Assembly (NCBI GenBank): GCA_021613535.1
Contig: CP075494.1
Span: 9,672,001 to 9,736,000, forward strand
Direction: 5' to 3'
Origin: Adineta vaga
Taxonomy: Eukaryota; Animalia; Rotifera
Length of the DNA stretch: 64,000 nt
Within the stretch, counting starts at the first letter, position 1. Each line of letters opens with the position of its first letter. Shown here piece by piece: positions 38,359 through 49,541 of this stretch. The notes beneath the pieces were generated by a model. That model saw only the letters and a list, made by a program, of their open reading frames with translations. It searched no databases and was not told where the DNA came from. Both the position numbers and the translations under genes were made by a program.

Positions 38359-44988
<6,630 letters not shown>

Positions 44989-45222: not shown

Positions 45223-45677
45223 TGTGTGTGCAAGAAGTTTACATATGTGTGACATATAAATATTAAAAGTACATAGACGTATAAAATCTATCAAAATGAA
45301 TATTATTTTCAATGCTATTTCATCAAGATAAAATGATTAACAATCGACATTGGATAAATTTTGAGATATTCAACACGAACTTCAGATTTTCGGTACTATC
45401 GTATTCATTGAGCTTCATTTGATTTTCAATTCAAACTGACGCAAGAATTCTATTTTAGTGAACAAAATTAGATGAAAATAAATGTTAAATTATTGAGAAC
45501 TCAAACTTATAGTGATTATAATTACTACTTCGTAACTTTTTTCTAAATTCCTACGTGTTTTCTCATCGAATACATTGATTATGCAAAAAAAAATGTTGAA
45601 AGATATTTCAGAATTAGTTTTATTTCACATCGAGTAAAAGGATTGATTTCGTTACATTGAAAAGTTGTGAAAAATAT

Positions 45678-46031
45678 TTAACCATATTTGAAAGGATTAA
45701 TATGATGACTATTGTCTTTAGTTTGACCTGAAATAATCAAAACAAAATTCGATGAAAATGATAAAACAAATACAAAGTACAAACCATAAGCGCAAAGTGC
45801 ATTTGTTAGTGGTAATGGTCGAAGTTGAAGACGATAATCACATAAAGCTGGATTGCGTTTATGTACCCATGGAGAAATTTCTAATCGTTTTGTTAAATCA
45901 TGCACTTCGACGTCATCTGAATTCTCCTGTTCGTCAATAATATCGCTTTGATAAAAATGAGGCCATGGTCGAGCTATAAGGAATGATGCATTGATCAAAA
46001 TAAGCATTAATACAAGTAATGAATACTGCAT
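45678..46031 (-). CDS. Secreted neuropeptide precursor A (C-terminal FKY-amide; 57-nt intron 45784-45728)
   Basis: Hydrophobic signal peptide, acidic spacer, two KR sites, and a terminal Gly amide donor directly before the stop. Confidence 0.82.
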   Translation of the reverse strand: MQYSLLVLMLILINASFLIARPWPHFYQSDIIDEQENSDDVEVHDLTKRLEISPWVHKRNPALCDYRLQLRPLPLTNALCAYGLYFVFVLSFSSNFVLIISGQTKDNSHHINPFKYG

Positions 46032-46373
46032 AGTTATTAATCTAATTTGAATCTTTCTCTTACTTTTACCGTTCTATGAATGAATTAGTTTAAAACAAAA
46101 TTCTAACTCTATATATTGATATTCGATAAAATTTGATGAAGATGACAACTATTCATCCAACCCACGGATTAAAGAAAATTAATATATGTAAAAGGAAGAA
46201 AATGTGATTAAATCTAAACAAATGATTGTCTTTTTTCATCATTCTTGAAACGTCTTCTAACTGTCTGTTATTGAACATTCAGATAGATTTTTGCATGTCA
46301 CTTTAGATTTATTAAAGCAAAAAAAAAAGGAATTTTTTTTCAATGAATATGTTGATTATGTTTAGTATTATTC

Positions 46374-46685
46374 TTATCGACCCCATCGCATAACATGATC
46401 ACCACCAGGTATTTCATCAGATCCTGATGGTTTGAATTGTTGATAAGTTGAGACACGAAACCATGTATTGCGATTTGCACGAGGATAATACGGTGCTGAA
46501 CGAAGATTTCGTGCTGATAATCGAAATGGAATGCGAGGTTCATTGTCAGTAATCAATGGTGAATATCGATCGTTTTGATAGAAAGATACTACATTTGAGG
46601 GAAGAAATATTGACGAACATGAGATCAACGAAGTAAGAAACAGAAGTGATAGAAGAGCTAGTGGTAATAAAAAATAAGACGACAT
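46374..46685 (-). CDS. Secreted neuropeptide precursor B (C-terminal MRW-amide)
   Basis: Leu-rich signal peptide, R-x-x-R sites (RNLR, RANR) and the ending HVMRW-GR-stop. A polypyrimidine-CAG lies immediately before the ATG. Confidence 0.82.
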   Translation of the reverse strand: MSSYFLLPLALLSLLFLTSLISCSSIFLPSNVVSFYQNDRYSPLITDNEPRIPFRLSARNLRSAPYYPRANRNTWFRVSTYQQFKPSGSDEIPGGDHVMRWGR

Positions 46686-47064
46686 CTGAAGTAAAAAAAA
46701 TTAACGAATAATTTATTTAAAAAAAATTTTATTATATGATGTGTATAACGGAAATTAAATCGAAACAAACCAGAAATGACTTGATATTTACGCATCTATG
46801 AAATCAAAATTATAATTGTGCAAATATTACCAGATTTACTGAATGAATCAGTTCTAATTGTTAATCTATAATGCATTCGGAAGTAAATTTAATATAATTA
46901 AACGAATGTGAATATGCACGCAACTCAACAACATCGATGCATTTTGTGCGGCTACGTTATACAAATATACAAATTAACATCATACTTGTTTCATGATTTA
47001 ATATATATTTCGTGTTGAAAAGTTCAGGATCATAGTGCGCGTACACATGATTTCCCACATGACA

Positions 47065-49541
<2,477 letters not shown>

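Follow-up and report, generated by a model that had tools for sequence, protein, structure and literature searches.

Among the neuropeptide systems described in spiralians, the NKY family offers a parallel in architecture to two small genes, here termed gene A and gene B, which lie next to each other on the minus strand of chromosome DNA from the bdelloid rotifer Adineta vaga. The stretch that was analysed (C5:9672001-9736000, 64,000 nucleotides, hereafter the window) belongs to an assembly of six contigs and 100.8 Mb and is AT-rich, with a G+C content of ~30%. NKY peptides have an N-terminal Lys (PMC6425005, PMC4200219) and a C-terminal Tyr, and they are encoded by two types of precursor (PMC6425005), the first with the central motif FW[RQ]P[LM]G[YG] and the second with G[YF]WIWMPAQG (PMC6425005). 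Their precursors hold a single peptide of 35-43 amino acids (aa) at the extreme C-terminus, which ends in a hydrophobic residue followed by R-Y-G and a basic residue; in nemerteans, the type 1 sequence carries GPLPVETR (PMC8557429 supplement). An earlier note on this DNA had listed two types of NKY precursor, each with one long RY-amide peptide, and a PLP motif in type 1—a description that agrees broadly with the published record (PMC6425005; PMC8557429 supplement). At the receptor level, the annelid protein activated by NKY is an orthologue of the sNPF receptor (PMC8557429), and the physiological NKY receptor is disputed even for the annelid and the oyster (PMC8557429; bioRxiv 10.1101/712687). 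Here, we report that genes A and B define two peptide families that are conserved across Adineta and Rotaria, that are undescribed in the literature searched and that are NKY-like in design. Judging from sequence features, we put the probability that both genes encode precursors of amidated signalling peptides, i.e., neuropeptides or hormones, at about 0.8.

The earlier note had drawn attention to two open reading frames on the same strand, 342 bp apart and ending in MRW-GR and FKY-G, and both their coordinates and the gap between them were confirmed. Gene A lies downstream of gene B, the 342 bp being counted from the stop codon of B to the ATG of A (Table 1). The coding region of gene B has zero introns, and its protein ends in ...HVMRW-G-R-stop. 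The open frame of gene A (46031..45678, minus strand) runs over 117 aa to the C-terminus ...NPFKY-G-stop, and its spliced product of 98 aa, not 117, is identical to the NCBI model I4U23_025022 (P0009), which is annotated as 'hypothetical protein'. The note had given a size of about 100 aa for both genes; B has 103 aa, and A arrives at its 98 aa through removal of a 57-nt intron from the longer frame. This intron, the only coding intron of A, lies in the Gly83 codon, 15 codons from the end, and gene models at NCBI from Adineta and Rotaria splice it identically. Its position is reused in L002, L006, L007, L011 and L015—the ohnologue, A. steineri and three more loci—mostly with stop codons inside, and it is by chance only that the intron is open in frame in A. 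vaga. A deviating copy was observed on a Logan contig (L014:3410-3518), where the exon 2 acceptor of A reads AG/G CAA vs AG/GT CAA elsewhere (the slash marks the splice junction). Canonical splicing would break the frame at this locus, and the conserved end, NPFRYG with Arg for Lys, is found in the shifted frame; the shift could be an assembly error or the mark of a broken copy.

Homologues of the two genes were recovered by word-based and exhaustive searches in libraries of billions of proteins, with E values of 1e-15 to 1e-37. The set comprises 38 B-type and 72 A-type proteins from bdelloids or metagenome contigs, the named sources being Adineta vaga, A. steineri, A. ricciae, Rotaria magnacalcarata, R. 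sordida, Rotaria sp. Silwood1 and Rotaria sp. Silwood2. Their entries in public records read 'hypothetical' or 'unnamed protein product', which is the usual fate that the earlier note had foreseen for such genes. Alignment A1 was built from 13 B sequences, and alignments A2, A3 and A4 cover gene A, with A3 devoted to exon 1 and A4 to exon 2 (7 copies). Spliced models of A were P0009, P0016, P0059, P0060, P0076, P0106 and P0112, and the other A loci were handled per exon, with the exons left unjoined in the searches.

Both families are most conserved at the end of the precursor. The invariant columns of A1 are R59-x-x-R62, P68, R69, R72, N73, W75, F76, R77, T80, Q82, K85, P86, D96, R100, W101 and G102, and 35 of the 38 B proteins stop right after the G of the universal RWG end or after this G plus R(RR). 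The last exon of A always reads [PLM]-F-[KR]-Y-G-stop, so that every complete A protein ends in F[KR]YG; further upstream, the core C-D-Y-R-[LF]-[QL]-x-R-P-x7-C is nearly fixed (A2, A3), and a [KR]R pair stands four residues ahead of the first Cys in 70/72 members. In a codon comparison, the ratio of nonsynonymous to synonymous differences (pN/pS) in B was 0.93 in the spacer vs 0.40 in the mature part, and in A it was 0.80 in the spacer vs 0.43 in the exon 1 part of the mature peptide. The spacers of both precursors are acidic and evolve fast, close to neutrality, and the peptides are constrained. These results support the reading of the earlier note that each gene holds a single long C-terminal amidated peptide—constraint and invariant columns are centred there, and the Gly is kept. 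The note would have counted a lack of conservation of this peptide and its amide-donating Gly in related species against that reading, and both proved to be conserved.

The two genes also share a fixed neighbourhood, in which a protein kinase gene, B and A are followed by a CHD3/4 gene on the opposite strand. The same order was found in A. steineri (L011), on a 2.46-Mb ENA contig (L006), on four JGI metagenome contigs (L007-L010) and on two Logan contigs (L014, L015), and the CHD3/4-kinase neighbourhood is kept in every bdelloid contig examined. Within A. vaga, an ohnologous pair on contig C2 (ohnologue protein I4U23_008543) displays the same order, the same strand, a spacing of ~265 bp and the kinase and CHD3/4 neighbours. 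In addition, the fused gene call P0045 consists of a B and then an A, both of them divergent. Conserved tandem linkage, which the note had suggested looking for in related genomes, is in this way seen in A. steineri, in further contigs and in the ohnologous region. The pair is present in one copy per subgenome, with no gene-family expansion.

Some additional observations concern the genomic placement of the two families. Several further A and B matches are apparently located on common contigs, which hints at more linked pairs. Two divergent B-type sequences, P0046 and P0048 (ENA sample ERZ25069412), stand beside Tc3/mariner transposase genes, not beside the kinase and CHD genes. Two short NCBI contigs (L012, L013), considered as transcripts, proved to be fragmented genome assemblies.

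Taken together, these data dispose of the simplest objection, namely that A and B are no genes at all and that AT-rich DNA left their frames open by chance. Apart from their small size, nothing speaks for such an origin, and it is refuted by dozens of homologues with E values down to 1e-37, by the conserved intron position, by the conserved neighbours and by the promoter elements listed in Table 1. Both A and B are real genes, distinct from each other and conserved bdelloid-wide, that most likely encode small secreted prohormones.

The architecture of the encoded proteins is that of peptide precursors. Each protein has a single strongly hydrophobic segment, located at its N-terminus, where the 11-residue Kyte-Doolittle maxima of the two proteins reach 2.95 and 2.62 vs at most 0.91 and -0.25 past residue 30—in line with the signal peptides that the earlier note had assigned to both. 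The features generally expected of a precursor are found in both genes, i.e., a signal peptide, conserved basic sites, a conserved C-terminal Gly donor and constraint focused on the peptide. We propose that the A and B precursors would enter the secretory pathway upon signal-peptide cleavage and would be cut by a convertase at the basic sites, after which basic residues and the trailing Arg would be trimmed and the Gly converted to an amide. Processed in this manner, B would give a 39-aa (or 29-aa) peptide with a Met-Arg-Trp-NH2 end, the shorter form starting at N73 if cleavage could alternatively take place at R69-x-x-R72. Gene A would give a 38-aa peptide with a putative Cys-x15-Cys disulfide loop and a Phe-Lys-Tyr-NH2 end, perhaps along with the free octapeptide LEISPWVH, which may be a separate, non-amidated product of the precursor. 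Domains of the enzymes needed for such processing are encoded in the A. vaga genome, namely a copper monooxygenase of the amidating type (PF01082) and the P domain of proprotein convertases (PF01483). Owing to the features of secretion, basic-site cleavage and amidation, we read the A and B peptides as receptor ligands; the released peptides would most likely be neuropeptides or hormones, presumably expressed in neurons, that act through RF/RY/W-amide-type G-protein-coupled receptors.

Two further readings of the A peptide were considered and rejected. The first was an internal amidation site, suggested by Tyr-Gly at the end of exon 1 followed by K-K-R-R; the K-K of P0015 and P0018 turned out to stem from translation of the intron (GTAAGAA...), and in L007 the Gly is replaced by Ser. 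Because this boundary Gly is a Ser in L007 and the 'KKRR' is translated intron, the 38-residue stretch is treated as one peptide. The second was a likeness of the 17-membered ring of A to natriuretic peptides, the residues of which do not match those of the ring.

Several points weigh against the view that A and B are precursors of signalling peptides. The signal peptides were assessed by hydropathy alone, as an 11-residue Kyte-Doolittle maximum. The earlier note had ascribed basic cleavage sites to both genes, which is accurate for the two KR sites of gene A; gene B has no dibasic site, and R-x-x-R occurs in it twice (R59..R62 and R69..R72). None of five family members matched Pfam at E values up to 10. 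Look-alikes in the ESM Atlas were mostly small prohormones (DH31, PDH, NPFF, NPF, CCK, NPS and kisspeptin) together with two unrelated clusters, and they provide a weak lead in favour of the view; the best of them scored 0.89-0.91 and had few features in common with A and B, which falls within the chance range.

A role outside signalling, e.g., as secreted antimicrobial, gland, egg or desiccation-related peptides, has to be considered as well, as a signal peptide and basic sites are common to many kinds of small secreted proteins. We deem such a role improbable. The strictly conserved aromatic-Gly end and the conserved basic sites are typical of receptor ligands, and so is the combination of a spacer that drifts near-neutrally with a peptide core that is almost invariant over Adineta and Rotaria; the constant copy number likewise argues against it. 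A function of A and B as precursors of amidated signalling peptides thus remains our preferred interpretation, and the next question is which known family, if any, they belong to.

The relationship to NKY was explored by eye against published sequences (PMC8557429 supplement; bioRxiv 10.1101/712687). One explanation of the pair is that A and B are diverged orthologues of spiralian NKY-1 and NKY-2, respectively, with NKY present at the base of Spiralia and its two types derived from a tandem duplication. The overall layout is the same—38 aa after K-R and then G-stop in A, 39 aa after R-x-x-R and then G-R-stop in B—and nemertean NKY has 38 aa plus G, as in A. With the type 1 precursors of nemerteans, phoronids, brachiopods, molluscs and annelids, gene A shares a small precursor, a long spacer, a dibasic site and a C-terminal long peptide. 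Nemertean NKY further shows P-L-P, an L at +5 and F-G at +8/+9, and A has the same arrangement with Y-G. Its end, H-K-P-F-R-Y-G, compares with H-x-x-P-F-K-Y-G in A, where the terminal motif is F-K-Y-G throughout except for F-R-Y-G (P-F-R-Y-G) in L014. On the other hand, the central NKY-1 motif is absent from A, which has Y-R-L-Q-L-R in its place, and P-L-P is not invariant (RPVSAV in L015, RPWPS in P0045). The Cys loop of A is without counterpart in NKY peptides. Moreover, A differs from type 1 in having mostly Lys, not Arg, before the final Tyr, in ending on Gly-stop without trailing basic residues and in carrying the additional KR-flanked octapeptide.

A similar balance of likeness and difference applies to gene B and NKY-2 as known from nemerteans and molluscs (C. 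gigas NKY peptide, bioRxiv 10.1101/712687). Common to both are a single C-terminal long peptide, an acidic Gly-rich middle part and an L-[LM]-R-aromatic-Gly-Arg end. The nemertean NKY-2 peptide and B also have W-x5-Y near the N-terminus in common, with 27 vs 26 residues from this Trp to the terminal aromatic residue, and their ends, K-L-M-R-Y-G-R-R vs N-L-M-R-W-G-R, are comparable. The Trp end of B, which reads [LMVP]-[LM]-R-W-G in 38/38 proteins, departs from the Tyr of NKY-2; the NKY of Phoronopsis harmeri ends in I-R-W-G-R-R, so a terminal Trp does exist in the family. The NKY-2 core (W-x-W-x-P-x-Q-G) is missing from B, where N-[TSA]-W-F-R-V-S-T-Y matches it at the second W and at the aromatic residue six positions on. 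In addition, B would be cut at R-x-x-R vs K-K-R in NKY-2, and it contains an invariant P-R-x-x-R-N stretch of its own.

Considering the two genes jointly, adjacency of genes that each resemble a different NKY type speaks for a common origin with NKY. Several considerations speak against it. The N-terminal Lys is missing, the residue after K-R in A being mostly Asn and the first residue of B being Ser (or Asn73); nemertean NKY peptides would also be without an N-terminal Lys if cut after K-K (PMC8557429 supplement). Furthermore, RY-, RF- and RW-amide ends recur across many families by convergence or deep ancestry, and the resemblance to NKY was selected post hoc. Profile searches joined neither gene to NKY. 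An exhaustive HMMER search with a profile of B among 1.84 billion representatives gave 23 matches, i.e., 22 B-type sequences and the weak, likely spurious P0049, in a library whose content of NKY precursors is not established. The word-based profile search of A gave 68 matches, all of bdelloid type, and none between E values of 1e-12 and 10, with the same caveat as to NKY precursors in the library. A literature search turned up no report that NKY-1 and NKY-2 are linked in other phyla. The earlier note had proposed a linked NKY-1/NKY-2-like pair, for which the shared architecture and the ends, compared by eye, offer support, whereas the absence of the central motifs and of any search result linking the families does not. 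Its remark that A and B share little sequence, so that any duplication would be old, fits the outcome of a profile-profile comparison (hhalign), which returned an E value of 0.17 over 18 columns, confined to the signal-peptide region, and which amounts to no detectable similarity. The idea of a tandem duplicate is therefore without support from sequence, and the duplication itself is unproven. In short, the A and B peptides resemble spiralian NKY in architecture and membership in that family appears plausible, although we would bet against it.

Alternatively, A and B may be peptide families specific to the bdelloid lineage, or too diverged to be assigned, with RY- and RW-amide ends that arose independently or descend from another RFamide-type ancestor (NPF/NPY, sNPF or luqin). 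All detected homologues come from bdelloids or from contigs with the same gene neighbours. The lack of a Pfam match, the missing central NKY motifs and the Cys-x15-Cys loop unique to A point in the same direction, and the assignment of rotifer neuropeptides is a known difficulty (PMC8557429). Set against this reading are the resemblances, seen by eye, to the two NKY types and, as regards an NPF-type ancestry, an architecture unlike that of NPF/NPY, together with the separate report of a rotifer NPF in the literature. Like members of the NPY/NPF family (PF00159), the predicted peptides are long (36-40 aa in that family) and amidated, with a basic-aromatic-amide end. However, the NPF peptide directly follows the signal peptide, ends in RPRF or RxRY and is succeeded by GKR plus a tail, whereas the A and B peptides are C-terminal and placed after a spacer; no match to PF00159 was found at E values up to 10. 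NPF genes have their intron inside the Arg codon that belongs to the RF/RY motif at the end (PMC4200219), unlike A, whose intron is placed 15 codons before the end. An NPF/NPY origin is unlikely, as it is at odds with the position of the peptide, the end motif, the placement of the intron and the Pfam result. Peptides of the sNPF, luqin/RYamide and short RF/RY/RW-amide groups resemble A and B in their C-terminal tetrapeptides (L-L-R-Y, M-R-Y, R-W-amide). They differ in being 5-15 residues long and often present in several copies, and the two-Cys motif at the end of luqin precursors is absent here. Overall, we give the lineage-specific origin a chance just short of even.

The coordinates of the genes, of their predicted products and of the surrounding elements are compiled in Table 1.

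Table 1. Features of the gene B-gene A locus in the window (positions counted from the first nucleotide of the window)
Feature	Position	Strand	Basis or remark
Gene B coding sequence, 103 aa + stop, single exon, MRW-amide peptide precursor	46374..46685	-	Open reading frame; 38 homologues, all RWG-ended; alignment A1
B signal peptide (predicted), ~aa 1-25, to conserved C-S-S	46611..46685	-	Sole hydrophobic segment; C-S-S kept in A1; cleavage position putative
B upstream furin-type site R59-N-L-R62	46500..46511	-	R59 and R62 invariant in 13-sequence A1; less constant in wider set
B predicted mature peptide S63..W101, 39 aa	46383..46499	-	All A1 invariant columns here or in cleavage site
B inner site R69-x-x-R72, straight before N73-x-W-F-R	46470..46481	-	Invariant in 13-sequence A1; kept in most of wider set
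B amidation donor G102 + trailing R103, then stop	46377..46382	-	RWG in 38/38 homologues
Gene A exon 1	45785..46031	-	Signal peptide aa 1-20, acidic spacer, K48-R49, LEISPWVH, K58-R59, start of long peptide with Cys64-x15-Cys80 loop; alignments A2, A3
Gene A intron, 57 nt, phase 1, GTTTGT...TTTCAG	45728..45784	-	Spliced out in NCBI model P0009
Gene A exon 2, last 15 residues ...NPFKY-G + stop	45678..45727	-	F, Y, G invariant in 7 exon 2 copies (A4) + 11 spliced/read-through proteins
A octapeptide LEISPWVH, KR-flanked	45861..45884	-	Trp nearly invariant across family A
A predicted mature peptide N60..Y97, 38 aa, split by intron, then amide donor G98	45684..45854	-	Alignments, homologue set
Poly-T tract + AG abutting B ATG, putative splice acceptor	46686..46700	-	Poly-T...AG/ATG in 7/7 loci
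Conserved non-coding block in B-A spacer	46261..46321	-	Contains octamer-like ATGCAAA
AATAAA signal of gene B	46308..46313	-	Within conserved non-coding block 46261..46321
Conserved upstream element of gene A, TGTCATCTTCATCAAA	46132..46147	-	GTC..CT..ATCA columns invariant across 7 loci aligned
TATA-like box of gene A (putative function), ~78 nt before ATG	46109..46115	-	Similar distance in 7/7 loci
AATAAA signal of gene A	45619..45624	-	Sequence
CHD3/4-type chromatin remodeller, C-terminal exons	43718..44556	+	Flank; Thr/Gln/His-rich tail
Protein kinase (PRKX-like), many short introns	47065..48448	-	Flank

Beyond the coding regions, A and B are separate transcription units, as an AATAAA signal follows each of them and gene A is preceded by an upstream element and a TATA-like box of its own. 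The acceptor-like sequence before the ATG of B was found in the window and in L002, L006, L007, L011, L012 and L014, and it could mark either an intron in the 5' untranslated region or a spliced-leader trans-splice site. A TATA-like box was observed as close as 45-60 nt upstream in two loci. The upstream element of gene A sits immediately upstream of its TATA-like box in all 7 aligned loci, and the conserved block further upstream in the spacer spans the AATAAA of B. These two conserved spacer blocks are probably 3'-end or promoter elements.

Rotifers and other Gnathifera constitute the main sampling gap in the spiralian neuropeptide map. Of the existing screens, one recovered very few precursors from Rotaria, and the sole wider one relied on arthropod models. 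If A and B are relatives of NKY, the origin of this family would move to the base of Spiralia, before the split of Gnathifera, and its two types would be tandem duplicates. In that case, a disulfide-looped KYamide and an RWamide would together provide a small, tractable system for addressing the disputed receptor and function of NKY. If they are not, the two predicted peptides would still be well suited to peptidomics and to receptor deorphanisation, in an animal that serves as a model for asexuality and for tolerance to desiccation.

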